From Anolis carolinensis (taxonomy: Eukaryota): a stretch of DNA of 64,000 nucleotides. The DNA lies in contig NC_085846.1 in assembly GCF_035594765.1 (NCBI RefSeq), positions 18,029,190 to 18,093,189 on the forward strand, in the 5' to 3' direction. Shown one piece after another: positions 27,801 to 55,800 of this stretch (positions are counted from its first letter, which is position 1; every line of letters begins with the position of its first letter). The notes beneath the pieces were generated by a model. It searched no databases. It saw only the letters and a list, made by a program, of their open reading frames with translations, and was not told where the DNA came from. The position numbers and the translations under genes were made by a program.

Positions 27801-30800
27801 ACCATCCTTGTGGGAGGCTTCTCTCATGTCCCCGCATGGGGCTGAAGCTGATAGAGGGAGCTCATCCGCGCTCTCCCCGGGTGGGATTCGAACCTGGCAG
27901 CTTGCAAATCAGCAGCCCAACCTTCAAGTCACAAGGCTTCAACCCACTACTCCACCGGGGGCTCCTACCCAAGTGGTGATGAAGCTGAGTTGTTGCAGTT
28001 CAAAGTCATCCATCAGACCAAATGGATGCAGTTGACAAGATTGCTCTTCCAATTGTCTATATTGATACGATTCCATGTTTTATTTTGTAATGTAGTGTTG
28101 TTGATGTAGTGTTGCTGATTAAGGTCTAGGATTATAAACTGAATAATTAAAATTTACCTCCAGTGAATCGAACCTTCTCCTGGCTGGCGTGCATTCCTAC
28201 ATGGGCTTCAACATTAAATGCTTCTATCTCAGCAAGCGTCCTCAGAACCCGGGATGTGGCCCAGCCAGGCAAAGTCAGGTTGTGAACTTTCTAAGAGAGA
28301 AGTGAGAGAAGAAACAGAACTTGGAAGAAGTTAGTGATCAATGACCAAAAAGATACTTTCCTAAACTGAAGAAAGATATATTGGAAAGTGGAGGTGTAAT
28401 GTGATGCAGTATTCCTACCTGACAGAAAAGGGAGTCGTGTACTCTCCAAAGACCCCGCAGAGTGAGCTGCTCCATTTTAAGTCCTGTGTAATTAGCCATC
28501 TCTCTTATGAAGCCCTGTGCAGGAGTAAAGGGTGAGAACCTAGATTAAGAAAAATAAACTTCAGTTGCTTAGTTTCAGTATCTTATTTGCATATGTTTAT
28601 CAAAAGAGTGATATTTCCATGTAAGTAGGTCAAACTCATAGGTGAAGCTCTTTAGTATAGCGGTGACAATGGTGACCTATCTATGGAATCAATTCCCTCA
28701 GATGTTCTGCCTGGCACTAACACATTTGGCATCTAAATGTCAGTTTACAATGTTATTTGTTTTTCCCGTATATAATAATATAAAAATCTATGTAGCTGGA
28801 GGTTCCATTAAGGTTATTGAAATGTACATACAAAGGCCTCTAGTGTTAATTATTGCTGATTTATTTTGTATCTACTATTGGTACTAATAACTTTCCTCTT
28901 TTAAAATGTGGTTTACCTATTTTAAAAATTATAATTGGGTCATTTGTTTAATGTTTTTTAATTGTAATTGATTAAATGGGAAGAGCAGTGCTAGGAACCT
29001 TCTCCTCCCCCCACTTCTTAATCTTCATACCTTCCAGCCTTCCATTTTAGCCTGATAACTTGGCAAATTAATTGTCTCTTCCATCAAATGTTGGTAGCGT
29101 TGGCAAGTCCGAGTTGGTGATTTCAGCAGCTGTGAGGACCAGTTTAGGGAAAACAGACAAAATCTGATTATAGGAAAAATCCAGTCCCTTGCTTCTCTCA
29201 GAGCTAAAGCATTAGGCAAAGTAGCCATACATTCTCCTTTGCATAGGGCAGTTTTCTATTTAAGGACTCCTCCTTTTCAGAAACGAGGAATGTGCAGCTC
29301 TCTACCATGCTAGCTCTCATCACTCCTTACAGTTGACTAGTTACGTAAGCTTGATAGATGATACAGCCCAAGGATATCAATACAATGGATTCAACTTAAT
29401 GATCCCAGGCAGTTGGCAATCCAGTGTAGGGCATGGGTGGTGGTGGTGGTGGGGGAGAATCCCATTTTACGCAGTCCAAGATTATTGCTTTCCATTATCT
29501 TACCTTATCATATTTAATAGGCACTGTATGGATAGGAACAGGACTCCAGCCAATCTCTGGATCCAAGTTTGAATAGAGTCCCATCAGGTTGGCTTGAGCA
29601 CTCATGAGGGTGCGGTCATAATCTGTGCTGCGAACATATATCTAAAATAGACATACCCATATTATTTATGGCTGCCATTAGGCCTCTTAACTTTGGACAT
29701 CTTCCTTAGGATATTTGCTTGATACCTTGCAGAGCACAAATGTTTTTAGTTTATGAAGCTCTTTATATAGTGTTTTGCTTGAATTTCTTTTTCTTCTTAA
29801 AAAAGAGCTCTCACTGATTCGGAGAACACATTTGGTTCTAATTATTGGAAGTTTTTAATATTTTGATCATCCCGTATTTTAGATTTGCATTACGGTGTTT
29901 ATATTTGTTTGTTGCCCTGGGAATTACTGAGCGCAAGTGATGTGAGTGTAATATATTAATACATAAGTATCAAATATTTACCTCTTGTGGTTTGTAGGCA
30001 GAACTCAAAAATCCATCGTATTTTTGCCTCAGAAACTTTCCAAGAGCCTTTTGTTGCAAAATACCTACCTACAAGGGCCAGAAACAGCAAGAATGAATGC
30101 CTGTTCTTCCTCTGCCTTACACAAACAGACACACAAAATGTGGACTTAAGAACATCCACCTCCTCTCCTCTCACACACACACAAGATCCCACCTTGGTGA
30201 GCTGCTGGAATCCCTCTGGCCAAGCGGCTGCTTTGTGGGGATCCGTTGGGTAGGTGCCAAGGGGGGATCGATCACCATGGCGATACACCTAAGACAGAAG
30301 GGGTTTCAAACTCAAGACAAAGAAAACTTTTCTGATCCACAATAATCCATCAAGGCTCTGTTTAGATGACACCATATTGTGCAATTGCTCAACCTCCGTA
30401 TGGGATCCAGATGACAGCATGCCTCAATTGGCAATCCTTCTGTGTTTTCCCACTGCTTCTTCCAGATTTTTTTCTTTCCATTAATGAAGAAGGAAAAGAC
30501 AGAACAGCCGGACAATATCATTCAAATGTTAATGCCAGAAGTTGTCCATCCTTGGAATCCTTCTCGACTTAAGATCACTTCTTAAACCTTACCTTCCTAA
30601 TGGGATTTATAAACTGTGAGCCTCTCTGAGTATATATGCCTTCAGGTTGCCTGTTGATCTATGGTGGCTTAATGAATTTCATAAAGTTTTCTGGTCACAG
30701 TACAAATTAACTCTTTATGCCACTGAACGGCTGTGAAAGTTTGAACATGACATGATGCCAACAGGCACTCCACCACCCATATGACTGCAATTGCAAAAGA

Positions 30801-34300: not shown

Positions 34301-35138
34301 TGTCTTTGCAAATGACATCTCCTCCCAGGGGACATCCCAACAGCTGATTGGCTCACTGGCAAATCAATCCCAAACTGTAATTTCCCTGCAAAAGGAAATG
34401 CCTGCCTGAAGGCAGTGACTTCAGCAGCACTTACAATCAGGGCGCAGATCCAGAGCAATTCCTCTGTCAGCCAATTAAGGAAGGGAGTGGGAGTTTTAAA
34501 TAGCTGTCAAGCTGTATAAGATGTTTTGGTTTCTGCATATGTTTTGTGCGTGTACACTTTGAAGCATCTAATTGTACTTACATCCCTTTTGGTCAAATTG
34601 AATAAACCTCTGTGGCTTGTTTTCCACCTGGTGTTTCTCTGTCCTGGTCCATTCAGTTTAGCTTGAACTCGCCGGGCATGGATCCTCTTATCCGTGGTTC
34701 TAGTTATCCATTTTATCCAATTCAATTTGAACTATCAGAAAACAAAGTCTCAACCTGTCTCAACCTCCTATGTAGACAATTCTGAAGCCCTTTGGATTTC
34801 TGGATAAGGGATAGTCTAAATATATAGGCCTCCTCGAGAGTCCTGGTATCTCTCACCTCTAACTGATGTCATGTTTCAATATATTATTAAGAAGTTGATC
34901 CCAGGTGCCCTACTGTTTGTATGCCTGGAGTTCAAAGGGCTAATGGTGCAAATGTTTGCACACAAGAATGTGCCTGCAACTGGCAGGAAAGCAAGGTTGC
35001 TGTTTCCTGCCCTACTAGATGCCCTTCCCTGGTCAGTGCCCTCCTGTTTACTAGGCCTTTGTCCTTTTACAACCACCATTCTCATTCGGACACAGGACAG
35101 ACCCAAAGCCTTGACAAGCAAGGATTTTGAGACCTATC

Positions 35139-38100
35139 ATGAAGCTGTTTAGCATCTTCATTGGCACCCTCTTTTTCATCGGAGCAGCAGGTCAGTATAT
35201 AGTCCCCAAATCTACTTACTGGTTTATTTGTGGGGGGAGTTGAGAGGGCCACATGAGCCAGCAGTTTGAGGATTGGATTATGATTAGGGACCAGGATTTG
35301 AATCCCCACTTGGCATGTAATTTTGGGCAAATCACATTCTCTTAACTCCATCTGAACAAAAAAAAAACTCCTTAAGACTGACATAAGTTGGAAATAACTT
35401 GAACGCACACAAGAACAAAGCAAATCCTGATGACTCTTCCTTCTCTCTCTTTGAGTGTTTCTACCTGCAAACGCCATGATTCTGCTGTTTTTGCTGAAGT
35501 GCTATGTGATAGCTGACAGCGGCAATATTTTGCTTCAGAATGTGTGCAGTTTTCCCCTTTGGAGGTTTGACTGGATGGCCATCTGTAAGGAGTGCTTTGG
35601 TTGTGTATCCCTGCATGACAGAATGGGATTGGACTGGATGGCCCATGTAATCTCTTCTGACTCTATGATTCTTTGGGTGAAGAGCGATTCTCATATAAAA
35701 TTTGTGGTGCAGAAAGTTTGTCCCTGCTTTAATCTATTGCATGTTAGAAGTGAAATAAGCATATTAAATTTCTCAAGATTGTATCTTGAACAGATTACTC
35801 ATTTTAAGCCAAACCACAAACCTGAAATTGCTATTTGTATTATATAGGTAGAAAATATGGATGAAATACACAGTTTACAGACATAGAATAGGACAAATAT
35901 GAGTTGATCAGTATCAATACTTTTTATTTTCTTTTATACATATAGCAGCATAACCTCTCTCCCTGACTCCCCACCATTATTGTATTTTCTTACTCAGAAT
36001 ACATGAAGACACACATATAGTACTTTATACTTTTGAACTGTCCTGATTTGGCAGGGACCATCAGATTAATGCTCTGCTATTCTATTTTTTTTCTATCTGC
36101 CTTTTAAAACACCCTACTTTCTTTTCCTCCTCTCTTTTCCCCTTCATCCTGCAAATCAAGTTCAAAGTTTTTTAACTGTGCCAGAAGCAACTTGAGAACA
36201 TACTGCAAGTCACTTCTAGTGTGAGAGAATTGGCTGTCTACAGAGATATTGCCCAGGGGATGCCCAGATGTGTTGCCATCCTGCTGGGCGGCTTCTCTCA
36301 TGTCCCCGCAAGGTAGAGCTTGCAGATTTGAACCGGCAACCTTCAGGACAGCAAACCAACTTTCAGGACAGCAAACCAACCTTCAGGTCAGCAATTCAGC
36401 CGGCATAACAATTTAACCCATTGAGCCACTGTGGCTCAAGTTCAAAGTGAAATGCACTTAACTTGCTCAGCACAAGGAGAGACAGAATTTTAACCTTTTC
36501 AGTGAATTCAGATGCAAATAAATTGCCTTTCCTACGTTGTGTATTTTTCCCTAAATTAATAACTGTTTAATGTTTATCTCTTCCCCTGCCCCTTGATAGT
36601 CTTGATATCATTTTATCCTAATTTCTTCTTTTACAGGATCTGCTGATGACATCTTTGATCTCTCTGATGCCTTAACTCCTGTTGATCCTCCTCAGATTAA
36701 CCCAGAAAAAGATCGTAAGTCAGGGTTGGGGATAAGACAGAGAGTTAGGGAATACTGAATGTTGTTATTACCTGAGTGAGAAATGGTAGGGAGAAAAATA
36801 TTATTGTGACTCAAAAACTAAATTGGTGAACCTTTAAAATTGGATCCGTTCAATGTGCTGGTTTAAATGGAAATTCACCCAGTTACAATCCTGGACTAGT
36901 CATTACAGAACTGTTGCAAGTATAAAACCAGGACAGAAAACCACAAATGCTACCTTGAGTTACAGTACTTAGAAAGAAGGTGGAATATGTATGTCATAAA
37001 TGTACTAATCAATAAGTAGCCATATATTTATAGTCCTAGCAGTTTCTGTAAGTGGGATATGTTTTGGTTATGTTGTGCAGGATATTGTAAACAAATTTCT
37101 TTTAAACGTAGAGTATTCATAGGTCAAATGAATGAAGTCAAACTGGGGTGCATTTACTGGGTAGAATTAATTCAGTTGGACACCACTTGAACTGCCACGA
37201 CTCAATGCTATGGAATCACTGGAGTTGTAGTTTGGTGAGGCACCAGCACTCTTTAGCAGAGAAGGCTAAAGACCTTGTACAACTAAATCTCCCATGATCC
37301 CATAGCGTTTAATCATTACAGTTAAAGTGGTGCCAAACTGCTTTAATTCAACAGTGCAGATGCACCCCCCCCCCCCAGTTGTCCTTTTCATTCAGGCATA
37401 CTCTGGGTAATGGACTGACATCGATGAAAGTACTTTGCTGCTGCCCTTTTTTACAAATGTATTGTAGGTCATGTTTAATTCAACTGTGCAGTAATATTGT
37501 AATGTGTTTAATTTCATTTAAGTATTATAACCCCTTGTATTTCTACATGTGCTTGTTTTTAATCTTTTTTTGTGAGCTGCCTTGGAACAAAGGCAAGATG
37601 TAAATCAAGTAAATGAAATTATTTAAGACTGAAGCTTGAGCAAGAAGTTGTGGTTACAGCTCAGCAGCTTGCCTCAGGCAAGTCATTCCAACGGTATTCC
37701 CGTATGGAGGGCTCCAGACCCTTATATGTTACAAGGCAACTATAACTGTGAATTTTACTCCTTAACAGTTTGTACCCAATACAAAATACAAAAGAAGTTG
37801 TGGGAATGGAAGGAAGAATTGTGAGTGGAAGATAATCTGGTGTGAGTGTGGCTGAAATGCCCTAAAGGCACTATAGCCTATTTGATCTTGTAAAGTAAGA
37901 AGGATTGGTTCTAGTTAGTACACTGGGCACATTTGCTTGGGTTAGGGCAGGCATGGGCAAACTTCGGCCCTCCAGGTGTTTTGGACTTCAACACCCACCA
38001 TTCCTAACAGCCGAAAGGCTGTTAGGAATGGTGGGAGTTGAAGTTCAAAACACCTGGAGGGCTGAAGTTTGCCCATGCCTAGGTTAGAGACACAATACTA

Positions 38101-41100
38101 CCCCAAGATGGAAAAAAAAATCCAGTGTTTAACCTGCAAGAACACTTCACTATGGGTGCATCTACTTCTACACTGTAGAAGTAAAGCATTTGACCTCACT
38201 TTAAGTGCCTTGGCTCAATACTATGAAATCCTGGGAGTTGTAGTTTTGAAACTTCCTTAGTCTTTTCTGCCAAAGGGTACTTGTGTCTCATCCCACTACA
38301 AATAACCTTAAAGAGTTAATATTAAGCTTACAACCAAGTGACAAGTCTGTGAAGTGCTTTGAACACGAGAAAGTGCTATATAATTTGCAAAGGATTTTGA
38401 AAAAATGTGTAAAAATAGATATTTCCAGTCTATGTCACACTCACATCCTATGCTTACATGTTGGTAACTCAGGGTTGATGCTAAGAAAAAGTAATAAAGA
38501 TAGTTATGTTTAGAAACCGAAACAAAGTTTCTCAGAAAGGTTATAACAATTCCATTCCCAGAAGTGTTCCTATTTAGTATTTTACTTTATTAACCAATTT
38601 CTTACAAAATCAGAAATTTTCCAACAGCGGGGTTCAAAAACAGGAACAGGAGTCGAAGAGTTTAAGAAATAAGTGGAAAAATTGCACTAAGTCTAGTATG
38701 TTGTTTTTTTCCAGGTTAGGCCAGAGTATTGTGCATGTTCTTAGAGACAGATATTTCCTTGTTTACATTATGTAACAAAATTTGAAAGATTTACTGTTCT
38801 TGGTTTGGAAGTGTTATTTTCTGTTTCATTGTATGGTGCTTCCTTTGAAAGTACTGTAGTTGTCATACTCCAGAAACTTCATTTTTGTGGCTGCCACAAA
38901 CTAGGTTGAATTGGTTGAGACTTTATGAGATACAGTAGTCTCACTTATCCAAACTTCACTTATCCAAGGTTCTGTATTATCCAAGGCAGTCTGCCTTTTA
39001 GTAGTCATTGTTTTTGTAGTAAATGTTGCAATATTTTGGTGCTAAATTTGTAAATACAGTAATTACTACATAGCATTACTGCGTATTGAACTACTTTTTC
39101 TGTCAAATTTGTTGTATAGCATGATGTTTTGGTGCTTAATTTGTAAAATCATAACCTAATTTGATGTTTAATAGGCTTTTCCTTAATCCCTCCTTATTAT
39201 CCAATATATTCGCTTATCCAACATTCTGCCGGCCCGTTTATGTTGGATAAGTGAGACTCTACTGCAGGGGTCCTCAACCCTTCAGACTGTGGAGGGGCCA
39301 AATTATCATTTGAAAAAAAAAAACCAAAAAAACGAACAAATACCTATGCACACTGCACATGTCTTATTTGTAGTGCAAAACAACAACAACAATGAAAGAA
39401 CAATACAATATTTAAAAATGAAAACAATTGTAACCAACATAAACCTATCAGGATTTCAATGGGAAGTGTGCTGAGCCACAAAATCCAAAGGGTGACCTTG
39501 GGCATGTCACACTATCTCAGCCTCAGGAGAAAGCAATGGCAAGCATCTTCAAAACAAATCTTGCCAAGAGAACCCTACAACGTGCAAGAACTGTGTTGAG
39601 AAAACCTCGTACTGAAGATTGGCTCATACTGAACCCTAACAAGCTTAAGACTCTTAGCAACAGAAGGGAATGGTTTTTCTTTGGAATAGATGACTCCACT
39701 TTGCTTCTTTCTTACCCACGCAGAGTGTCCCAATGAAGCTCGTGACATTGTCTTCCTGCTTGATGGCTCAACCAGCGTCCGTCCCTCAGATTTCATTGAA
39801 ATGAAAGCTTTTATTGCTCTCATGATGAAAAGATTCCCTGAGAATACACATGTGAGTAAGGAATGATTCACAACAGAGAGTGGGGTTGGGTGGGATATGA
39901 ATTTTCATAGTCTCTAAACAGAGCTGTCCCGATGCATCTTGCTGGTTCAGGTGAAGACAAAAATGGCTTCTTGCCTGCTTTTTCCATTCCATGTGTAGCG
40001 GTTAAAATTGAATATCTTTTCTCATGACTGTTGTGCAAGAAAGGCTGAGGTGTGATGTCACCTCTCCAGGCTGGTTTCTAAGACCTTGAAGCAAGTTATT
40101 ATTATTATTATCTGCATCAGTTAATGCAGTTTCAAACCATTTCAACTGCCATGGCTCACCGTTTGGGGATATTTGGATTTGTAGTTTCATGAGCCACCAG
40201 TAGTCTTTGACCAAGAAGACTAAAGACCTTGCAAAACTACAAATCTCATGATTCTATAGCATTGGGCCATAAATTGGTGCCAAACTGCGTTTATTCTCTA
40301 CTGTAGATGCACTCACAGTCCCACTTTATAATACCTAGACTTCTTGGTGATAAGATGGTATATTCATTAACATTTTAAAATATGGCTTCTTATATAAGAT
40401 GCCAGCTGCAACTCCTGAGTTTCCATAGCATTAAGTTGTGACAATTAAATTGGTATCAAGTCTACAGTGTGGAGGCACCCGAAGTTGGAAATTGATGGGA
40501 AACACCAGAAAGGCCAGTGTCCTGTTATTCAGTTTGATGTTGACCAGTTCATGTGGCAGGGTTGGTGGTAATCTTGATGGAGACAAAGGAACCATATATT
40601 AATGCACGAATATGTGATAACCAGATCTAAAATATGATGGATATACAGTACTATAATCCAAAAATGATGTAAGGGAACAACAACTAATGTCATCTATGAA
40701 ATGGATGCCTTAGTTGCAGACGATATCCAGAAGCATTTTCTCTTCCAGCATAGCACTGTTGCTTAAACAAAGAAGGAAATATGAATGTTCATAGAAGTGC
40801 CAAGGCACAGTTTCCCCAATTAATCTTTCTGGGTCTTCTTCAGTTCGCTCTCCTACAGTTCTCCAGCCACTTTCAAGAACATTTTGACTTTAGACATTTC
40901 CAGAGAAATCGCGATCCTGACCATCTGATGAGAGAAGTGAATCAGCTGAGAGGCTCCTCATACACAGCCACTGGGATCAGGAAAGCCACGTGGGTATCTT
41001 GCTACCATTCCTCTTTTTATATAGTGGCATTGGTAGTGGGATGAGGAGGGTGCAGGTTGTACCAGGTGATAGTATGATGGAGTGAAACCAATTATGGTGT

Positions 41101-44011
41101 TTGGGAAAGAAGTGGGCAAAATAGGAAAGCAAGCAGCTGGGCTTGCTCCCTTGGAAGGCTGGTGGGGAAAGTCCTGTTCTTCTCCTCTTTCTGGATTTCT
41201 TTACAAGGATTCAACTCTACTCCCTCCTTTGTGTGTCCTGAAGTCCTTCCCCTTCTTTACCACCCATTTACATATTTTCTTGCTTCACACCTTGTCCTTC
41301 GTCAGTCCCCTCTTTTCTTTAAACAACAGATATTTTAAAGAAACTTCCTCTCATATACTGACTGAACTGAAGTTTGGTAGTCTCCTATATTATAGCCACT
41401 CTACCACTGTTGCTGTTTCCTTGCAGCTAATCCTCCTTTTCTCTTCTCTCTACTGCTTAAAAGGGAGCTATTCACCACACAGAAAGGTGCCCGAGCTACA
41501 GCCAAGAGGTTCCTTGTGGTGGTGACGGATGGGGAGAAATTTGGGGACATGTTGGAGTATGCAGAGGTTATAGAGGAAGCCAACAGAGCTAAAATTACAC
41601 GCTTTGCCATTGGGGTAAGGAGCAACGTACTTACCTATGTTTATTTATTTAATTACCTACACATTTTTGTCCTGCGTAGTTGGAATAAATGTCACATCAG
41701 GACGTAAAACTAAGCACTGGGCTGCTTGTTTGAAATCCATCTTTTCCTTTAACGCTTACGGCTTTCACCTCCAAACATGTTGCTTTTCTTCTGGCAGGTT
41801 GGCATAGTTTTCACAAGCAGAGTTGCCCAGAGGGAGCTCCACAGCATTGGCTCTCATCCTGTTCCAGATCACGTCTTTGTTGTGAGGCACTTCACCGGCC
41901 TCCGGGACATCCAGACCCAGCTGAAAGAGAAGATTTGTGCCAATCACGGTACCAGAATTTAGGAGCTGGGGAAGGCAGCAAAGCAGCAGAAAATTTAAGA
42001 ACTTGGGAAAGGGTCAGCCAACTAGTTGCCCAAACCCTGTCTGAATAAAGAAGGGTTTGCCTGTTGACAAAAGAGTAAAGGAGGTTAGCACTGGGGGGCT
42101 TCTACATGGTAGAATTAATGTGGCATGACACCACCTTAACTACCATGGCTCAATGTTATGGAATTTTGGAGTAGTAGTTTGGTGAGACACCAGCACCATT
42201 TGTAAGAGACAATTCCCACAATTCCATAGAATTAAGCCATAGCAATTAAAGTGATGTCAAACTGCACTAATTCTACAGTGTAGATGCACCCTTGATCTCT
42301 TGTCAAAGTGGTTTCATAGCCTGAGTATAATCCACCAGCAAAGTTTTTTATAGGGCTCTCATGAAACATGCTTCTGAGGATGGTAGGGCTAAGGTTTTAT
42401 CTACACTGCCATACAAAATCCACATTATCTGCTTTGAACTGGATTATATGAGTCTACACTGCCATATAATCCAGTTCAAAGCAGATAATCTGGATTTTAT
42501 GTGGCAGCGTAGAAGGGGCCTAAGAGAAAGACTTCTCTTGGAGAGCTGAAAATTCAGGCTGGATCTACCCTGCCCTTTATCTCAGGATTGGATCCTGGAT
42601 TATCTGGCAGTGTAGACTCATATAATTCAGTTCAAAGAAGATAATCTGGCATCAGATCCTGGGAAAAAGAGCAGCATAGATCCAGCCTCAGAGAGGGTTA
42701 ATATGGGAGTAAATAAGCCTTTCAAAAAGTCTGCATGGAAGCAGTAAACCTTGTAAATCATTGCCAGCAACTTGAATTGTGCTAAGACTAGTACCTGGTG
42801 AAAATGTCAGTGCACAAGGTTTCTGTCCTTCCCTGCCTCACTCAGCAGTCTTTCTGAAATATGTATTAGGCATCTTCCCCAAATCAGGATTGTAATGGCT
42901 GTAATTCATAATTTCCTCTGTTCAAGACACAATTGCCTGGCACTTATGAAATGGTGGCAGCTTTATGTGGGTGAATTGTAGAATGACACCACATAGTTCA
43001 GTACTATGCTTTGCAAGGCTTTTTCTGCAGCGTTCTTTGCCAGAAAACACAGATGACTCACCAAATTACAAATCCCAGGATTTCATTGCATTGAATCCTG
43101 GTAATTAAGGTGATGTCAAACTGCATTCATTCTACAGTGTAAAGCAGGCATGGGCAAACTTAGGCCCTCCCGGTGTTTTGGACTTCAACTCCCACAATTC
43201 CTAACAGCCTCAGGCCCCCTCCTTTCCCAGCTGCGGGGGGAAGGGGGGGAGGGAGGAAGGGGCCTGGGGCTGTTAGGAATTGTGGGAGTTGAAGTCCAAA
43301 ACACCAGGAGGGCCTAAGTTTGCCCATGTCTGGTGTAAAGGCACCCTCAGTCTTCAGTAGTCACATCCACATAGGTAATTATCACTAGGGCTTTAAGGCA
43401 GACTTGGGGTGGCATCTTCCAGAAAATGGGGGGTCTAAAACAATAAATTTTCTAGACTCTGTTAGAGGTTAGGGAACAGGATAGCCAAGTCTAAAATCTG
43501 AAAGAATGTCATATTGAGGAAGGGGCAAGTTTGTTTTCTGCTGCTGTGGAGCTTATGACCCCATTTATACTGTCCATTTAATGCAGTTTCAAACCAGTGT
43601 TGGAAGGTTTTGCTGTGGAGATAATTACACAGGAGATCCTGGAACTAGTTTGAGACCCGGATGGCGATTACACAAACCACAGAGCACTGATGCATATTAA
43701 GGACTTCCTTTTGCACATTTTTGTGGGAGTCTATTGTCCGGCCGCTGTAGTTTGAAGTTAGCTTTGAGTTGCATAAAATGGACAGTGCAGATGGGGCTGG
43801 TAGCAACAAAATAATAACTTCTGTTCTGTGTCTTTCAGGCGTCAGGGTGCCACACACAACAAGAGCACCGTCAGCCTCACCGGGCACCTGCCCCAAGCCT
43901 GATGCTCAGGTGCTGCACAAACTGGAGCAAGTGCTGCATAGCCTGGATCAAGTCAAAACCAAGCTGGATTTCCTGGAGGCTAAACAAGGGAAATGTGGAC
44001 AAAGGCCCTAG
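35139..44011 (+). CDS. Predicted secreted integrin alphaM/X-like I-domain (vWA) protein with N-terminal CD99-like exon and C-terminal coiled coil, 7 exons, 292 aa
   Basis: Exons 35139-35190, 36637-36714, 39724-39851, 40844-40989, 41464-41614, 41798-41948, 43839-44011. All are GT-AG and phase-compatible; total 879 nt including stop. Protein: MKLFSIFIGTLFFIGAAG-SADDIFDLSDALTPVDPPQINPEKD-QCPNEARDIVFLLDGSTSVRPSDFIEMKAFIALMMKRFPENTH-FALLQFSSHFQEHFDFRHFQRNRDPDHLMREVNQLRGSSYTATGIRKAT-ELFTTQKGARATAKRFLVVVTDGEKFGDMLEYAEVIEEANRAKITRFAIG-VGIVFTSRVAQRELHSIGSHPVPDHVFVVRHFTGLRDIQTQLKEKICANHG-VRVPHTTRAPSASPGTCPKPDAQVLHKLEQVLHSLDQVKTKLDFLEAKQGKCGQRP*. The I-domain motifs (DGSxS, TATGIRK, TDGEKFGD, DHVF, QLxEKI) match ITGAM/ITGAX as I recall them. 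AATAAA at 44392 and 44420. Confidence 0.85.
36172..36436 (-). mobile_element. Anolis-type SINE, degenerate
   Basis: Homologous to the copies at 9091 and 27687. Confidence 0.7.
38933..39264. mobile_element. Tc1/Mariner-type MITE
   Basis: TIRs CAGTAG(AG)TCTCACTTATCCAA / TTGGATAAGTGAGACTCTACTG, preceded by TA. Confidence 0.75.
43145..43332. mobile_element. Short hAT MITE (palindromic)
   Basis: TIR CAGGCATGGGCAAACTT; TSD GTGTAAAG. Confidence 0.85.
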
Positions 44012-44644: not shown

Positions 44645-45982
44645 TAGGGAAAAATTTTGCAAGGCTAAAGCGCACAATGAGCTCAGGTTTGCCAGGGAAA
44701 TTAAAAACAATAAAAAGGGTTTCTTTGCTTACATCGGTAGAAAAGGGAAGAACAACGATAAGGCCTCTGTGAGGAGAAATGGGGTGATGGTGGCAGGGGA
44801 TAGGAAAAAGGCAGAACTACTTGATGCCTCCTTTGCCTCAGTCTTCTCACAAAAAGAAAGTCGTCTTTAACAGCAACATGAAGTGGACAAAGGATTAGGG
44901 GAAATCCAACCCCAGATAGGGAAACAAGTCATCCAGGAATACTTGGCTGCTCTAAACGAATTCAAGTCCCTGGAGCCAGATCAACTACATCCAGGAGTAT
45001 TGAAGCAACTAGCAGAAGTCATTTCAGAACCACTGGCAATCATCTTTGAGAGTCCCAGCAGACTGGAGGAGGGCGAATGTGGTCCCTATCTTCAAGAAGG
45101 GGAAAAAGGATGAACCAAAACAATTACCATCCGGTCAGCCTCACGTTGATACCAGGTAAGATTCTGGAAAAGATCCTTAAGGAAGTGGTCTGCAAACATT
45201 TAGAAACAATTGCAGTCATCGCTAATAGTCAACACAGATTTATCAAAAACAAGCCATGCCAGACTAATCTGATCTCTTTTTTCGATAGAGTTACAAGATG
45301 GGTAGACACAGGGAACGCCGCGGATGCAGCATATCCAGATTTCAGTAAGGCCTTTGACAAGGTCCCCCATGTTGTTCTTGTTGTTTATTCATTCAGTCAC
45401 TTCCAACTCTTCGTGACCTCATGGGCCAGTCTACGCCAGAGCTCCCTGTCCGCCGCCACCTCCAGCTCCTTCAAGGTCAAGACACTCACTTCAAGGATAC
45501 CATCCATCCATCTGGCCCTTGGTCGGCCCCTCTTCCCTTTTCCTTCCATTTCCCCCAGTATCAGTATCTTCTCCAAGCTTTCCTGTCTTCTCATGATGTG
45601 GCCAAAGTACTTCATCTTTGCCTCTAATATCCTTCCCGCCACTGAGCAGCCAGGCATTATTTCCTGGAGTGTGGACTGGTTTGATCTTCCTTCGGTCCAA
45701 GGCACTCTCAGAATTTTCCTCCAGCACCACAGTTCAAAAGCATCTATCTTCCTTTGCTCAGCCTTCCTTATGGTCCAGCTCTCGCATCCATAGGTTACTA
45801 TGGGGAATACCATACTCTTAACAAACTAGTCAAATGTGAGCTAGGCAAAACTATGGTTAGGTGGATCTGTAACTGGCTAAGTGAACGAGCCCAAAGAGTG
45901 CTCACCAATGCATCTTCTTCATCCTGGAAATAAATGAGGAGTGGAGTGCCATCAGCAGGGTGCTGTCCTGGGCCCAGTTCTG
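44645..45982 (+). mobile_element. CR1 LINE ORF2 (RT) fragment interrupted by an antisense RTE insertion
   Basis: NYHPVSLTLIPGKILEKI..SQH.F..KPCQTNLISFFD..DFSKAFDKVPH; CR1 sequence resumes after about 45813. Confidence 0.85.
45371..45812 (-). mobile_element. RTE-BovB LINE 3' end
   Basis: ORF 45397-45813 VFPIVTYGCESWTIRKAE.RKIDAFELWCWR...GRPRARWMDGI, with a (CAA)-type tail. Confidence 0.9.
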
Positions 45983-46810: not shown

Positions 46811-49800
46811 TGGGGAGCGGTCAGAGGTCACAGTTAGGGTTAGGGTGTTGGAGTTGGGTGGGTAACTAGGGGTGCATCTATGAATGCAGTTGGACATTAC
46901 TTTAGCAGTGCTGTTGCATCATGGGAGTTGTAGTTTGGGGAGGCAACAACTCTGGCAAAAGGTGGCTAAATAACTTGTAAAACTACAAGTCCCATGATGC
47001 TATCAGTTAAAGAGACATCAAACTGCAGTTTATAGAGTTAAAAGGTTTAAGAGCCGGGAAGTCATAGGGTTGAAAGTCTTTAGATTTGGGTTGGGGATGA
47101 GGGATTCATAGGGTTAAAAATATTTTGGTTTATAGCAGTACTTCTCAACCTATGGGTCTCCAGATGCTTTGGCTTCAACTCCCAGAAATCCTAACAGATG
47201 GTAAACTGGCTGGGATTTTTGGGAGTTGTAGGCCAAAACACCTGGGGACCCACAGGTTGAGAACCACTGGTAGGGTTAAACGTCTTTAGTTGTAGGTTGG
47301 GTTAAAAGTCTTTTGGTTTATAGAATTAAATGTCTTTAGGTTTGGGTTGGGGATGAGAGATGTATAGGATTAAAAGTATTTTGGTTTGGATTAAATGTTT
47401 TTAGGTTTGGGTTGGGATGAGGGATTTATAGGTTAAAGTCTTTTGGTGTATAGGGTTAAACATCTCTAGGTTTGGGTTGGGGATCAGGGATTTATAGGGT
47501 TAAAAGTCTTGGTGCATAGGGTTAAATGTCTAGGTTTGGGGTTAGGCATGAGAGATTTAGAGGATTAAAAGTCTAGGTTTAGGGTTTGGGACAAGGGATT
47601 TATAGGTTAAAAGTCTTTTGGTGTATAGGGTTAAACGTCTTAAGGTTTGGGTTGAGGATCAGGGATTTATAGGGTTAAAAGACTTGGTGCATAGGGTTAA
47701 ACGTCTAAGTTTGGGGTTAAGAATGAGGGATTTATAGGGTTAAAAGTAGATTTAGGGGTTGGGTCTAGGGATTTATAGGTTCAAAGTCTGAGTATAGGGC
47801 TAAACATCTTTAGGTTTGGGTTGGGGATCAGGGATTTATAGGGTTAAAACTCTTTAGGTTTGGGAGTCGGGGATTTATGCTATAAGGTTGAAAGTCTTTA
47901 GATTTAGGGGTTGGGGATGAGATATTTATGGGGTCAAAAGTTTTGAGGTTTAGGATTTGGAACTAGGGATTTATAGGTTAAAGTCTTTTGGTTTATAGAG
48001 TTTAACATCTTTAGGTTTGGGTTGGGGATTAGGAAGTTATAATGTTTAAAATCTTATAGGGTTAAAGTCTTTAAGTATATAAGAATTAAGTCTTTATGTT
48101 TGGGTTGGGGTGAGGGATTTATAGGGTTAAAAGTCTAGGTTTAGGGATTGGGTCTAGAGATTTATAGGTTAAAAGTCTTTTGGTTTGTAGGGTTAAACGT
48201 CTTTAGGTTTGGGTTGGAGATGAGGAATAAATGTTTTCATGCTTAATGTTTTATTGTTATGCTATTGGTTCATATAGTTTTTTAATTATTTAATTTATGA
48301 ATATTTTAATATGTTTACATGGATGTGAGGCATTGAATCTTTGCCATGTATAATGCTGTACATCACTTTGAGTCCCCCTAGGGGTGAGAAAAGCAGTCTA
48401 TAAATGAATTAAATAAATAACAAATAAATAGGTTTGGGTTGGGGATGAGGGATTTATAGGGTTAAAGTTTTTAGGTTTAGGGATTGTGATACATGCAAAT
48501 GGAAACATGAATGGTCCTGGGTTCGGATCTTGCTTCATTCAGATTCCTTGGGGCTTAATCTTGGGGATCGGAAGTTTGCAGGGTTAAAACACTAACAGTC
48601 GGAAGGCAAGGTTGAGTAGGTCTTGAGTTTGAATCTAGATCTATTCAGATTTCTTGTCTTTTCCCACCCCTTTCCCAGACCCTGAAAAGGTGCTGGATGT
48701 GGGTGCCCAACTGCCCTCAAACGCAGACCCCGAAGACACCATCCAAAGCCTGCAGGCACAGCTGGCGGCTGCTTTGACGGAGGTAGAGACGGTTCGGACC
48801 GTGGCCACTGTGAGCGAAGGCACCAAGCAGGAAGCAGTGGAGGCTGTCCGTCGCCAATGGCAAGAGGAAGTGGCCTCTCTTCAAGCCATCTTGAAAGGTA
48901 CAGCCACCTTGACTCTCAAGGGAATGCATCTGCACTGTTGAATTAATCCACTTTGACCTCGCTTTAACTGCCACAACTCAGTGCTGTGATACCATATCAT
49001 GGGAGTTGTAGCTTGACAAGGCTCTTCTCTGCCAAAGAGTACTCTTGTCTCACTAAACCACAAATCCTAAGAATCCATAGCATTGAGCAGCTAAAGTGGT
49101 GTTGAACTGCATTTATTCTACAGTGTAGATCAGGCACCTTCAAACTGCAGCCCTCCAGCTGTTTGGGCCTCCAATTCCCATAATTCCTGACCATTCAACA
49201 AGCTGGATAAGACTTCTGGGAGTTGGGGGCCCAAACAACTGGAGTTTGAGGGTGCCTGGTGTAGATTTGTCCAGGTGGAAACAATGGTTAAACTGTCTCA
49301 AATTGAGGGTTAGAACCAGGATTCTGGTCTCCTGTATAGTACATTCTCAGGTAACTGGAACTCTCAAGCAACCAGCAAAAATGGAAGAAATAATACTTTA
49401 AATAAAAAATTACAATAAAATCAGTTTTTAATACAGTAAATCTGTGTTATATTAAATTAAGATTAATGCCTTAATTTGTTTTTAGTATTTCAATATTAAT
49501 ATCAAGTCAATATAGTGTGATATGGTATATTTTGCGGTATAATATTAGACTTATTTTAAATAGTAACTTAAGCAATCACAAACTACTAAGCATCTAGGTT
49601 GCTGTGAGTTTTCCGGGCTGTATGGTCATGTTCCAGAAGCATTCTCTCCTGATGTTTTGCCCCTGTCTATGTCAGCCATCCTCAAAGGTTGCCTGCCATA
49701 GATGTGGGCAAAACATCAGGAGAGAATGCTTCTGGAACATGGCCATACAGCCCGGAAAACTCACAGCAGCCCAGTGATTCTGGCCATGGAAGCCTTCGAC

Positions 49801-52800
49801 AACATACTAAGCATCTACTAACCCCTATGGGTGTTGCTTAACTGGGAGTCTATTTGTTTCCTTAAGTTTTGACTTCCTCAACAGACACGATCTCCAGCTA
49901 CGAGGCTCGCCTTTCCGCTTTGGAGCGGAGCAGCCGAGAAAATGCCTGGAGCCGCCTGTTGCCGCGGTCCAACCCCTTGGATTCCTTAGAGAAACAGATG
50001 GAAAAGGTAAACTAGTGGACAAACAGGAGGCTTTGGGAGGTGCCAAGTTCAGGTCTGCATACAGACTCTGGCATTTCCTTCCTCACTGCAGGCCCAAGAG
50101 GACACTCAGCGGCTCCGGGCCATTGTGCTTCCAATGGAACAGGAAATTGCGGAGTTGAAAGCAAAGTTAGCTCGCGCCGAAGGCCTGGTTCAGGAGTTGC
50201 AGAGCGAGCAGGTAAGATGCAGAGAAGCGGAAAAGCAAGAAGAGGGAATAGGATGGAGGGGAGGCTTGAATCAGTTCGGAACAGGAAAAAGGAGAAAAGA
50301 AGTAATCTCCTGTGTAACATGTCTGCGGTTGTTTTAAAGAATGAAAAGATTGTGCCAGGAGAAATCTAGTGCCGCAAGCCTGTACCTGGATGCAGTAGTT
50401 GTTTTTCTGTGCCAGTAGGTGCCTGGCATTGCAAATTAGCAAACGAAATGAAGGTTGCAATTACACTAGAATTAATGCAGCTTGACACCACTTTAAATGT
50501 CGTGGCTCAATTTATTTTATATACCATACTTGTATCTTGCCTTTCTCAACCCCGAAGGGGACTCAAGGCAGCCTTATAAAGGCAACATTTCATTGCCGCA
50601 TGTATACATACATCAATGAATAAACAAAAACATTAAAGACAACCAATTAAAGCATAACATTAAAACAAGAATTAAAATAACAATCCTGTGATTTCAATGC
50701 TGTGAAATCATGGGGTTTTTACTTTTGCAAGGTCTTTAGCTTTCTCTGCCAAAGAGTGCTGGTGCCTAACCAAACTACAACTCTCACAGTCCTATAGCAT
50801 TGAACTATGGCAGTTAAAGTGGTATCAACATGCATTATTATACAATGTGTTCTCAGAGGCTTTCATGGTCAGAATCACTGAGTTGCTGTGAGCTTTCTGA
50901 GCTGTATGGCCATGTTCCAGAAGCATTCTCACCTGAGACAAGTGGAGTTTATATATGTGAATGTTGCAGTTGGCCACCTTGATTAGCATTGAATAGCCTT
51001 GCAGCTTCAAAGCCTGGCTTCTTCCTGCCTGGGGGAATCCTTGGAAGGTGCAATGCTAATCAAGGTGGCCAACTGCAACATTCACACTTGCCTCAAACAG
51101 ACAAGAGTTCTTTCTCCCACTCTGGTCATTCCACAGATATATAAACCCCACTAGCCTAGTTTCCAACAGACCTCACAACCTCTGAGGATGCCTGCCATAG
51201 ATGTGGGTGAAATGTCAGGAGAGTATGCTTCTGGAACATGACCATACAGCCCAGAAAACTCACAGCAACCCATTAATCTTACAGTTTAGATGCACCCTAA
51301 GTAACTTGGCTTGTGAATGATGTTTGAGCAAAGGCGGGACAAGCTAGCTTTTGCTGGATTGCTCCAAACCTCAAATGAGATATTGGAGTAAAGGAGGTAT
51401 GAAGTGCAAATTAGAGGTTTGATGTTAGCCAGCTCAAAATTCCATGGCCAAGATACCAAGTCTTTCTTTGAACTCCTAGTAATACCTGCCCTGGCAACCC
51501 AGATACCACACTCCCATTCAATATTGAGATTTTTCTCTGTAGTAGCAATTTTTTTAGACTTTGGGAACACAGACAGGACAACTCCAGGAATGTCTCAGAA
51601 TAATTTGGCCATAGCAGCCTGGGGGATTCTGGGAGCTGTAGTTCAAATAAGTAGTGGCTAAATGAGCTCTTCTGTTTGAGGACATTCTAGTTCTGCATGT
51701 ATTTATATGTGCCTTTAAGTTGTCGCCATGAGTTTTACAGGGTTTTCTTAGACACATTTTCTTAGACACACTGTAGAATTAATGCAGTTTGATAACTTAG
51801 AATCATAGAAGAATAGGGTTGGAAGTCACCATATGGCCCATCTAGTCCAACCTCCTGCCATGCAAGAAAAGCACAATCAAAGCACCCCCGACAGATGGCC
51901 ATCCAGGCCTCTGTTTAAAAGCTTCTAAGGAAGAAGTCTCCACCACACTCCGAGGCAGAGAGTTCTACTGTTGAACAGTTCATACAGGCAGGAAGTTCTT
52001 CCTAAAGTTGAGGTGGAATCTCCTTTCCTGTAATTTGAACTTATTGCTCAGAGTCCTAGTCCTTTCACATATTTATACATGGCTATCACTTCTCCTCTCA
52101 ATCCTCTCTTCTGCAGGATAAGTATATCCAGTCCTTTAAGATGCTCGTCATAGAACATGGTCTCCAGAACTCTGATCATTTTAGTTGCCCTCCTCTGGAC
52201 ACCTTCTAGATTGTTAATATCTCTTTTAAACTGTGTTGCCCAGAACTGGACGCAGTATCCCAGATGAGGTCTAACCAAAGCAGAATAGAGAAGCACCATG
52301 ACTTCCTTCAATCTAGACACTATACCCTTTTGATACAGCCCAAAATCCTATTGGCTTTTTAAGCTGCTGCATCACACTGTTGGATCATGTTCAACTTGTC
52401 GTCCATGAAGATTCCAATTTAAGAGCCACGGCTCAGTGGTAAAGAATAATAGGAACAGGAGTTTTGCAAAGTGTTTATCCTTTTTTGCCAAAGAATCCTG
52501 ATGCCCCACCAAACTACAAATCCCAGAATTTCCTACCATTGAGCCATTGTGTCAGAGTGTATTAATTCTGAAGTGTAGTTCTACTCTAAGAGGCCCAGAT
52601 TCACTCTGCTCCCCATGTAATCCAAAGTACTTTTCCCAGTTCTTTCCTCTGAAAGATCAGCTATAATATCTTGTATTCATTTGTCTCCCATCCAGATACT
52701 AACCAGAGCTGCTTAGCTTCCATGATCAGACAGGATCTTATGCTTTTATGATATTTTGCTCTGTGGGGTTTCCTTATTTATCCTTTTTCCTTTCTTCAGC

Positions 52801-55800
52801 GTTCCTTAGGTAGCTCCTCTGAATCCTTGCTGGCTGATGCCGACGTTGTGCCCTCTGATTCAACTCCAGATGACCACATTACTTTGGGAGAAGGAGGGGT
52901 GGCTGATAAATTTGCACGGGGCCTTGACAGTGTATCCATTGCCTCCATTCCTTCCTTGGCCCCGAGTCCAGGGCCTCCAATCCGACGCCGGTTTGCCCCT
53001 AGCCCTGAGACTGTATCCATTGCTTCTTCCACTGGGACCCTGGTGCCAGAGACCATCTACCTGCCACCCGCTGGGTATCAGCTGGTGCCTGCAGCAGAAT
53101 GGACACAGCTGCATGAAAAGGTGTGTGCATACACATGTATGTAGAGTAGAGTGTGCTGAATAGTGTGGATAGATGAGAATTGCAGCTAATTGGGCTTTAT
53201 GCCTGAGAACATGCCTTCTGTACTTTGCTGGGCAATTCACTTGGCAAGTCCGGTTCTTTTCAGATCAAGTTTCCTCTATAATCTGTCAGAGCTTAGAAGC
53301 AGTATGTATGGATCAGAGATGGTTTCCCAACTGTAGTTGTATCATTCCGTTACTTGTAAAAAGAGTTTTTAGTATAAAACAATGAACACAGAGTTTAAAA
53401 GGCAGATTTGTTCATAGGACAGCACTAAGGAAAATTATAAACATTGTATGCTTTTGTATCAGCTTAAAATGCCTCTTACCAGATCCAATAGCACAGACCC
53501 CGTGGAAGTATTTGGTTAAGAAAACTCATGTTTTATTGGCTTGACTGCAGTTCCCTTAAACTATGAATATGATCAAACACCATTACATTTTCTAACTTCC
53601 AGTCCCAACATACTGTAAAGTATTCCTAGGAATTTACTAGGGTCTCCAGGGAAACTTAGTAGTATCCTCCTTGGAAGCTTATCATAAAATCATTTAAGGA
53701 TCTGGCAAATTCTTAGGCCCTACCTACATGATATGATACCGTTTCATAATGCTGTTTAACTGCATTAAACTGCATTATATGGCAAAGTGGACTTAGACAA
53801 TGCAATTCAATGCAGAGAAACTGCATTATGAAACATTTTTGAAGTATAATTTTGGACAATTCTCAGAATCCCTCAGCTGGCATGATCAGTGGCCTTGCTG
53901 GCTGAAAAATTCTTCCTACTTTTGGGCTCTGCATTTGCAAGCTGGTGGTGGGGATGCAAGGGAGTAGTTCCCTTCTGGAGTATTCTGAAGTAGAAGATAA
54001 ATTAAAAGCTGGGGCTAGGATGAAGGATAGTGGGCACTAAACTTCTCTCTTCCTCTTTGACATTTATGACAGTGTTGGAATTGTAAATCAACAAGTAACT
54101 TTTTTTAAATCCCAACTTCTTGTCCTTACTGTCCTTGACTCTCTTCTCCCAGGTCCAGCAGCAACATGAGGCTCTGGAAGCAGCAGCGCAGGAAAAGGCC
54201 AGCCTGGAGGAGGCACTGAGACGTAGCAATGATGAATGTAGCAAGCAGGTTTGCCCTCTTTCTCTGCCCCATGCCAGTTGGTGATAGTCGGGTAATAATA
54301 AAAAGGTTATATGTGTTGTTGAAGGCTTTCATGGCTGGAATCACTGGGTTGCTGTGAGTTTTCTGGGCTGTATGGCCATGTTCCAGAAGCATTCGCTCCT
54401 GATGTTTCGCCCACATTTATGGCAGGCATCCTCAGAGGTTTTGAGGTCTGTTAGAAACTAGGAAAGTGGGGTTTATAGATTTGTGGAACGTCCAGGGTGG
54501 GAGAAAGTACTCTTGTCTGTTTGAGGCAAGTGTGAATGCTGCAATTGTCCATCTTGATTAGCTGTGGACATCTCTACATAAGAACCACGAAACGCAGCAT
54601 TGCCCAAACACAAATCAAGGAACATGAAAGTGCTCAACCAGAGAAGTCAGCCATAGCAAAGCATTTGATGAACCAACCTGGACAGAGCATATTATTTGAG
54701 AACACAGAAATGCTGGACTACTCTAACAACCACAATGTCAGACTACACAGAAGCCACTGAAATCCACAAGCATGTGGACAATTTCAACAGAAAGGAGGAA
54801 AGTATGAAAATGAACAAAATCTGGCTACCAGTATTTTGAAAAACTCTAAAATCAGGACAGTAAATAAAGAACAACACTCAGAAAATAGAGGAATTTCAGA
54901 CATGAAACAATCAGGGTCGGCTAACACCTCCTGACAAATAATTCCCCCAGGCAGAACGCAACCAGGCTTTGAAGCTGCAATGCCATTCAGTGCTAATCAA
55001 GATGGCCAATTGGAACATTCGCACTTGCCTCAAACGGACAAATAGTTCTTTCTCCCCTGGACATTCCATAGATACCCTGTTCCCCCGAAAATAAGACATT
55101 TTCAGAAAATAAGACCTAGTAGAGGTTTTGCTGAATTGCTAAATATAAGGCCTCCTCCAAATGTAAGACCTAGAAAAGTTTGGAAGCATGCCTGCTGAAC
55201 AGAACACCAGAGCATGCAGGATTGGTAAATGTACGTACCATAGATTGATGTACAGTAGAGTTCCGGTTATCCGTATTCCGGTTAATCAACACTCCCTCTC
55301 CTTCTCTTGAGTTCCTTCCTAGGGCAGCCCAGGGAAGGGAGCTCAATGGAAGAAGAGGGAGAGAGAGGAGGTAGCGCCCTGTGAGCGTTGCTAGGCAGCA
55401 GCAATCACGGGGCGCTTCCTGGAGCCGAGAAATGCTCCCCGGGTTTCCTTCAGCCAGGCCATTGCTGGAGGAAGGAAACTCTTTCCTCCAGCAAGAGCCT
55501 GGCCAAGGGAAACCCGGGGTGGGCTCCCGTTTCTCCAAAGGCCAGGCCCTTGCCAGGCTGGGCCCTGGTGCTGCCGGAACCTGGTGTGGTGAAGGAGCTG
55601 AGGGATGGAGGCGGGCAAGCAAAGGAGGGCGGCAAAGTCCCTTCCTCACTCACTGGTTCTCTCACTCACTCACTCACCCCACCACGTCTCCGTGCTGCCG
55701 TTGCCGCTGCTGGGATCTGGCCTGGTAAGTGAGCGAGGGAGGGAGGGCGAGCAAGCACCCACCCTGTTCTCCGTCAGTTTCGCTTATCTGTCATTCTGCC

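Follow-up and report, generated by a model that had tools for sequence, protein, structure and literature searches.

Organization of the Locus and Gene Model

The window, a 64-kb stretch of Anolis carolinensis DNA (64,000 nucleotides), carries a gene for which a model of seven coding exons was established (Table 1). Its product of about 292 aa begins with a signal peptide and, within a few residues of the cleavage site, an acidic tag. These are followed by an I domain of the integrin alpha-M type, which has a MIDAS, then by a Pro/Ser/Thr linker and finally by a coiled coil with flanking Cys residues. The ATG at 35139 opens a run of 17 hydrophobic codons. Exon 2, as read from the sequence, is a 78-nt exon of phase 1-1 with AG/GT borders. 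It is bounded by the acceptor ...ttttacag/GATCTGCT..., with a polypyrimidine tract before the AG, and by the donor ...AAAGATC/gtaagt. Together with the one base carried over, it is translated as G-SADDIFDLSDALTPVDPPQINPEKD, with one base left. The four I-domain exons that follow form a 576-nt cassette, also of phase 1-1, and the last exon encodes a heptad segment between cysteines.

Table 1. Features of the gene in the window (positions are those of the 64-kb stretch).
Feature	Position	Strand	Description
Exon 1, coding part	35139..35190	+	ATG, 16 signal-peptide codons and 1 base; donor cag/gtcagt, phase 1
Exon 2	36637..36714	+	Acidic N-terminal tag, 25 residues and two split codons
FDLSDAL motif	36654..36674	+	Fits the CD99 conserved-region consensus (F/L)DLX(D/E)A(V/L)
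Exon 3	39724..39851	+	I-domain start, MIDAS DGSTS; Pfam VWA E=2e-07; phase-1 entry as in integrin I-domain exons
Exon 4	40844..40989	+	I domain; Pfam VWA match; 100% identity to A. sagrei P0073
Exon 5	41464..41614	+	I domain, TDGEK MIDAS Asp; Pfam VWA match; RNA loose end at 40990 reads into 41464 onwards
Exon 6	41798..41948	+	I-domain end, Pfam VWA match, exits in phase 1
Last coding exon	43839..44011	+	Pro/Ser/Thr linker, Cys-flanked coiled coil, stop 44009-44011

The exons of the window were searched singly, and the A. sagrei orthologue P0073 was used as a full-length stand-in. Based on tblastn, this orthologue supports all seven exons with 79–100% identity (94% for exon 1, 100% for exon 4 and 81% for the last exon). 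The predicted splice from exon 6 to the last exon (41948 to 43839) lies outside the interval over which RNA contigs were mapped.

RNA contigs of four runs were mapped over positions 35100-41099. In run X4, GT..AG joints were found from 35190 to 36637 (depth 1658), from 36714 to 39724 (depth 1783) and from 39851 to 40844 (depth 2083). The two joints flanking exon 2 come from this one run only, and the third was also found in run X8, which belongs to another study. A loose contig end of run X4 at 40990 continues into the start of exon 5. Intron contigs of the same run had a depth of 7-20. The label of run X4 as RNA is itself a guess, but its spliced contigs, about 100 times deeper than its intron contigs, establish that it is RNA. 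The high depth of the joints compared with that of the introns places exon 2 in an abundant spliced mRNA, and no joint skipping exon 2 was present among the joints listed for the mapped interval. Exon 2 is a true coding exon that is spliced in constitutively. The original prediction had described it as a symmetrical phase 1-1 exon of 78 nt directly after the signal exon, and both its borders in the sequence and its RNA joints bear out this description. Absence of the exon from transcripts had been named as one of two outcomes that would refute the prediction, and the RNA joints show the contrary.

Orthologues and Their Distribution

A search with exon 6 led to a 291-aa Crotalus protein, and further protein and alignment searches with the latter yielded some 25 orthologues, each of them squamate and around 290 aa long. 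They were found in geckos (Eublepharis, Paroedura, Sphaerodactylus and Heteronotia), skinks, cordylids, a lacertid, an amphisbaenian, Elgaria, Varanus and iguanians, as well as in snakes, from Python and Candoia through vipers and elapids. The gene thus spans Gekkota, Scincoidea, Lacertoidea, Anguimorpha, Iguania and Serpentes. We failed to find an orthologue outside squamates by a length-filtered, word-index protein search, a design that limits the weight of this absence. The best non-squamate match came from a turtle and was part of a genuine integrin, propeller sequence included.

The position of the gene was compared between loci. In a gecko, it is flanked on one side by an acid-phosphatase gene of opposite orientation and on the other by Rabaptin/RABEP2. 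The latter again comes after the gene in a cordylid, and Rabaptin exons were found downstream of it in the window. In the gecko, the rattlesnake and the cordylid (girdled lizard), exon 2 is likewise an exon of its own with phase 1-1, preceded by an exon 1 with a phase-1 end. The orthologues have been named automatically as "integrin alpha-M/X/D-like", and no relevant paper was found under the annotation names of the gene.

The I Domain and the Coiled Coil

Pfam VWA matched all four I-domain exons, two of them above and two below the curated cut-off. Among solved structures, the best HMMER match of the I domain was alpha-M (183 bits, E=8.5e-53), followed by alpha-X (167 bits) and alpha-L (102 bits); alpha-E and alpha-1 also ranked behind alpha-M. 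As in integrins, the I domain is encoded by four exons, the first of which is entered in phase 1. The mapped integrin genes of Arapaima and Gulo share this phase-1 entry before a Cys codon. The MIDAS residues (D-x-S-x-S, T/S and D) are present as in alpha-M and are complete in 18 of 20 orthologues. The exceptions are Hemicordylus, in which two of them are lost (replaced by H and A), and Crotalus, in which one MIDAS Asp is degraded.

On the other hand, the squamate I domain stands alone in a secreted protein of 292 aa. The beta-propeller, thigh and calf domains and the membrane anchor of an integrin alpha subunit are all lacking, so a beta2 partner is not possible. The Glu of the FAIEG segment of integrins is replaced (ICANH in the window), and new conserved Cys residues occur at positions 45 and 232. 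The database name "integrin alpha-M-like" is misleading.

An AlphaFold2 model computed from a 20-sequence alignment gave ten-residue block means of about 87–97 for the I domain and a C-terminal helix at residues 258-288. Residues 1-43, including the tag, were modelled as disordered (pLDDT below 50, about 30-34).

In matrilins and other extracellular proteins, a VWA domain is accompanied by a coiled coil at the C-terminus that has Cys residues on its flanks, and the squamate protein shares with matrilins the order of a VWA-type domain and a short coiled coil with flanking cysteines. It differs from them in having no EGF modules, in a VWA domain of the CD11 integrin type and in a CD99-like tag that is unmatched in matrilins. 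This architecture suggests a disulfide-linked oligomer, and the protein is a free, probably oligomeric alpha-M-type I domain. To our knowledge, a "soluble integrin head" of this form is not known from mammals.

Conservation of the Motif in Exon 2

Conservation was expressed as the frequency of the commonest residue in each column of an alignment of 20 full-length orthologues. The seven columns of the motif had a mean frequency of 0.91, compared with 0.55 for the six residues before it and 0.47 for the thirteen residues after it within exon 2. The mean for the I domain was 0.76. FDL(S/T)DAL came third among the 286 seven-residue windows of the protein, on a par with the loops of the metal site, and the hydrophobic positions F, L and L were as conserved as the acidic ones. 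Such a motif between drifting flanks is the pattern expected of a short linear motif under selection. The greater conservation of the motif than of its neighbours had been set in advance as a point on which the CD99 proposal could fail, and it was found in all these comparisons.

The consensus of the tag across orthologues is (D/E)-D-x-F-D-L-(S/T)-D-A-L. The CD99 conserved-region consensus (PMC5589627) is matched by 17 of the 20 full-length orthologues; the other three are snakes with degraded versions, namely FAISDAF in Crotalus, FDLSDAF and FDLSDVF.

It should be considered whether the resemblance to CD99 is a coincidence and exon 2 is a functionless spacer after the signal peptide. The shortness of the match suits this explanation, as does the silence of the Pfam CD99L2 model described below. 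However, the motif is held at 0.91 across the whole squamate tree, whereas its neighbours in the same exon stay at 0.47–0.55. In addition, the CD99 consensus occurs only once in the six-frame translation of the 64-kb window, at exon 2, and once at each of three orthologous loci (the Crotalus FAISDAF being counted by means of a loosened pattern). It was also absent from the non-orthologous proteins in a scan covering 82 proteins and 75,443 residues in all. This absence from the other frames of the four loci and from the unrelated proteins likewise speaks against coincidence, which we regard as highly improbable. Judging from the pattern of conservation, FDL(S/T)DAL appears to be a real, functional short linear motif rather than a folded domain, carried by what seems to be a chimeric squamate protein.

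Similarity to CD99 and Origin of Exon 2

The original prediction placed FDLSDAL at the N-terminus of mature CD99, and published data agree with this. A human CD99 peptide starts with DGGFDLSDAL (PMC13604740), a urinary CD99 peptide starts at DGGF (PMC10534506), and the consensus of the conserved regions is (F/L)DLX(D/E)A(V/L), these regions being cleavage sites of meprin beta (PMC5589627). The tag in the window is identical to the human motif in all seven residues and at the same place, the mature N-terminus, and geckos share nine of the ten residues of DGGFDLSDAL. The likeness spans about 10 residues, with the CD99 side represented by the published human peptides and consensus. A composition-matched shuffle test was performed with the 20 exon-2 peptides against the 12-residue CD99 motif quoted in the original prediction; it gave a mean z of 6.0 with p<0.01 in 19 of 20 orthologues and the strongest scores in geckos, and it is post hoc, as the motif itself had caused the exon to be flagged.

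Searches for further CD99 features gave negative results. Pfam CD99L2 (PF12301) had no match at E<=10 with the exon of the window and 16 orthologous N-termini, which is a weak negative given such short queries, and a feature search of the ESM Atlas with the gecko N-terminus returned no usable match. A pattern scan of the 20 orthologues revealed one copy of the motif, with no repeat of it and no further CD99 regions such as (F/I)XDXDLXD. Neither a second CD99-like exon nor a nearby CD99-like gene was found in the window and the three other loci. No transmembrane segment was found past the signal peptide, the top 19-residue hydropathy after residue 60 being at most 1.59 and lying inside I-domain strands.

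Compared with CD99, CD99L2 and XG, the squamate protein is alike in that its motif lies within a few residues of signal cleavage, and the acidic segment around it is Pro-rich and probably unstructured. It is unlike them in having neither a transmembrane segment nor a cytoplasmic tail and in ending in a coiled coil. A single motif copy without (F/I)XDXDLXD, followed by an I domain and a coiled coil, is also foreign to these proteins. It is not a member of the CD99 family, from which at most one or two exons would have been borrowed. The original interpretation was sustained in part. As to its suggestion that the 5′ end derives from a CD99-family paralog, the identity and position of the motif, the phase 1-1 symmetry of the exon and the shuffle score speak for it, and the silence of Pfam, the shortness of the likeness and the lack of any other CD99 feature speak against it. 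Descent of exon 2 from CD99 is plausible but unproven, and the "chimera of two leukocyte-adhesion families" may be retained as a reasonable hypothesis.

Alternatively, though in our view this is rather doubtful, exon 2 may have arisen independently and come to resemble the CD99 motif by convergence, for instance on an F-x-L scaffold already in place. It could have come from the parent integrin copy or from a former intron. Two routes from an integrin can be proposed: a new acceptor within the 118-nt pre-I-domain exon (CF-L---L ... PQ--P), or a deletion by which integrin exon 2, from its FNLD start, was fused to the last part of the pre-I-domain exon. Later selection would then have shaped FDLSDAL, possibly through binding to what CD99 binds. 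In the two integrin genes mapped, the signal peptide is interrupted by a phase-1 border at the end of exon 1, and the border at which the I-domain cassette is entered is of phase 1 too, so an internally deleted integrin copy would read through without any second gene. The F-x-L-x-x-x-L and PQ..P of integrins also lie about as far from the I-domain Cys as this origin would require, and full-length alpha-M, alpha-X and alpha-L, when aligned with HMMER, cover the last 4-8 residues of exon 2. The DGFNL of mammalian alpha-M corresponds to DGFDL in geckos, and the Arapaima integrin scored z 4.6-6.7 against iguanian exon 2 (6.7 in Pogona).

These similarities were not general, however. The mean z of the pre-I-domain exon was 0.63 for the turtle and -0.16 and 0.37 for two mammals, values like those of shuffles, and that of the start of integrin exon 2 was 0.54 and 0.27. 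For the Arapaima pre-I-domain exon the mean z was 1.85. The Arapaima likeness peaks in the derived iguanians and is weak in geckos, whereas common descent would predict the reverse; we read it as chance and record it as unexplained. Furthermore, the alignment of exon 2 to integrins needs two indels, and only 2-4 of the seven motif residues are shared with integrins, compared with all seven shared with CD99. An hhalign comparison of the N-terminal alignment with the turtle integrin fragment covered 18 columns around the start of the I domain with a probability of 0.2.

With regard to the individual integrin exons, the identity of exon 2 with the pre-I-domain exon was rejected, since the latter has 118 nt and phase 0-1 and its tetrapod scores are like those of shuffles. 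Integrin exon 2, with FNLD at its start, was not supported as a source either. Among the three candidate sources tested, CD99 is the best candidate on these scores (mean z 6.0 compared with at most 1.85).

Based on the above results, we lean, by a little, towards the following account. Exon 2 would encode a CD99-derived tag of a squamate-restricted secreted protein, joined to a CD11 I-domain cassette and serving as a multivalent partner-binding peptide. In the most likely history, the N-terminal source would be a CD99-family signal exon together with the phase 1-1 motif exon. Through phase-1 introns, these CD99-type exons would have been joined to the I-domain cassette of a CD11-type integrin gene, with its four exons and its phase 1-1 borders. 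The FDL(S/T)DAL core has been held nearly constant from geckos to snakes, while the rest of the exon drifts. The data show the exon, its splicing and phase, the identity, place and conservation of the motif, the predicted disorder of the tag and the secreted architecture; the CD99 descent, the oligomerisation and the binding function of the tag we infer from these comparisons.

Possible Function of the Tag

The most likely function of the tag would be that of a partner-binding peptide, several copies of which the coiled coil would display beside the I domains. A bolder proposal, which we consider unlikely, is that the tag is a working copy or mimic of the N-terminal contact motif of CD99 and that squamates secrete a multivalent soluble adaptor. 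The tag end of such an adaptor would engage whatever recognizes the CD99 conserved region, for example CD99 itself on leukocytes or endothelium, and the ligands of its I-domain end would be complement fragments, fibrinogen or ICAM-like molecules. The protein might then act as a lineage-specific opsonin or as a regulator of leukocyte migration.

If this were true, a molecular function could be given to the conserved motif of CD99. In the CD99 literature cited here, no binding function is given to the conserved extracellular motifs, which appear there solely as epitopes of antibodies and as sites of cleavage by meprin beta. In squamates, the motif is found in a very different, secreted protein that does not belong to the CD99 family, and strong purifying selection has acted on it throughout the squamate tree. 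This is independent evidence that the seven residues make up a self-contained functional unit, and the squamate protein offers a simple soluble system for finding the partner of the motif.

The original prediction had also suggested that the Asp-rich motif is a tethered ligand of the protein's own MIDAS, either in cis (autoinhibition) or in trans (head-to-tail assemblies). The motif does contain two invariant or near-invariant Asp residues, the MIDAS is intact in nearly all orthologues, and the spacer of about 15-20 flexible residues between motif and domain is, by our estimate, long enough to reach the top face. The joint degradation of the motif and one MIDAS Asp in Crotalus points the same way. 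Against this, Hemicordylus keeps FDLTDAL despite its two lost MIDAS residues, and the equal conservation of F, L and L and of the acidic positions is more in keeping with docking into the groove of a protein than with mere coordination of a metal. In the AlphaFold2 model, residues 1-43 were left unplaced with no docking of the tag on the I domain, which is weak evidence, as the model is a metal-free monomer. The MIDAS-ligand suggestion was not supported by these results, and we consider it quite unlikely. A docking motif for an external partner is favoured over a tethered metal ligand, with low confidence, because the hydrophobic positions are as conserved as the acidic ones, Hemicordylus retains the motif without a full MIDAS, and the model has no docking. 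It should be noted that a MIDAS-ligand role would be compatible with either origin of exon 2.

I domain of the secreted protein

Some metal-site residues of the I domain are gone in two of the orthologues, with His and Ala in the place of two of them in Hemicordylus (P0066) and Gly at such a position in Crotalus (P0018), so metal-dependent binding may have been lost in some lineages. Four cysteines are near-invariant among the orthologues, at positions 45, 232, 253 and 288 of the Anolis sagrei protein P0073. In integrins, the Glu of the FAIEG segment touches the beta subunit. At the end of exon 6 (window 41936-41948) this segment is replaced by ICANH, as would suit an I domain whose pairing with a beta chain has been lost.

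A further unusual non-integrin deployment of the CD11-like I domain is P0006 (1157 aa), in which three such domains are separated by long Ser/Thr/Val/Pro repeats.

Resemblance of exon 2 to an integrin segment

The segment immediately N-terminal to the I domain of the fish (Arapaima) integrin P0079 (residues 128-147, L004:6457-6574) resembles iguanian exon 2. The two share the pattern F-x-L-S-acidic-x-L-T-P ... GQPP, with z up to 6.7 in the composition-matched shuffle test. Turtle and mammal integrins are without this resemblance, and we tentatively read the likeness as chance.

Neighboring genes and repeats

Features around and within the gene
Feature	Window position	Strand	Evidence
ORF with RHGDRSP-type histidine acid phosphatase signature	29956-30288	-	Signature; opposite strand
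Intron 2 stretches	37900-38100, 38900-39500		Extreme contig depth, up to ~900,000
Reverse-transcriptase-like ORFs	44883-45813	both	
Rabaptin/RABEP2-type gene, exons; downstream	48654-59316	+	Pfam Rabaptin, E=1.3e-19

The acid phosphatase-type ORF piece had no match when searched by itself against Pfam; a His_Phos_2 gene holds the same position and orientation in the gecko locus (L001:1-6525). The Rabaptin/RABEP2-type neighbor likewise comes after the orthologue in the gecko and the cordylid, and in Protobothrops a single annotation merges the two genes into one 498-aa product (P0064).

With this depth and numerous odd joints in all four runs, the intron 2 stretches look like high-copy interspersed repeats.
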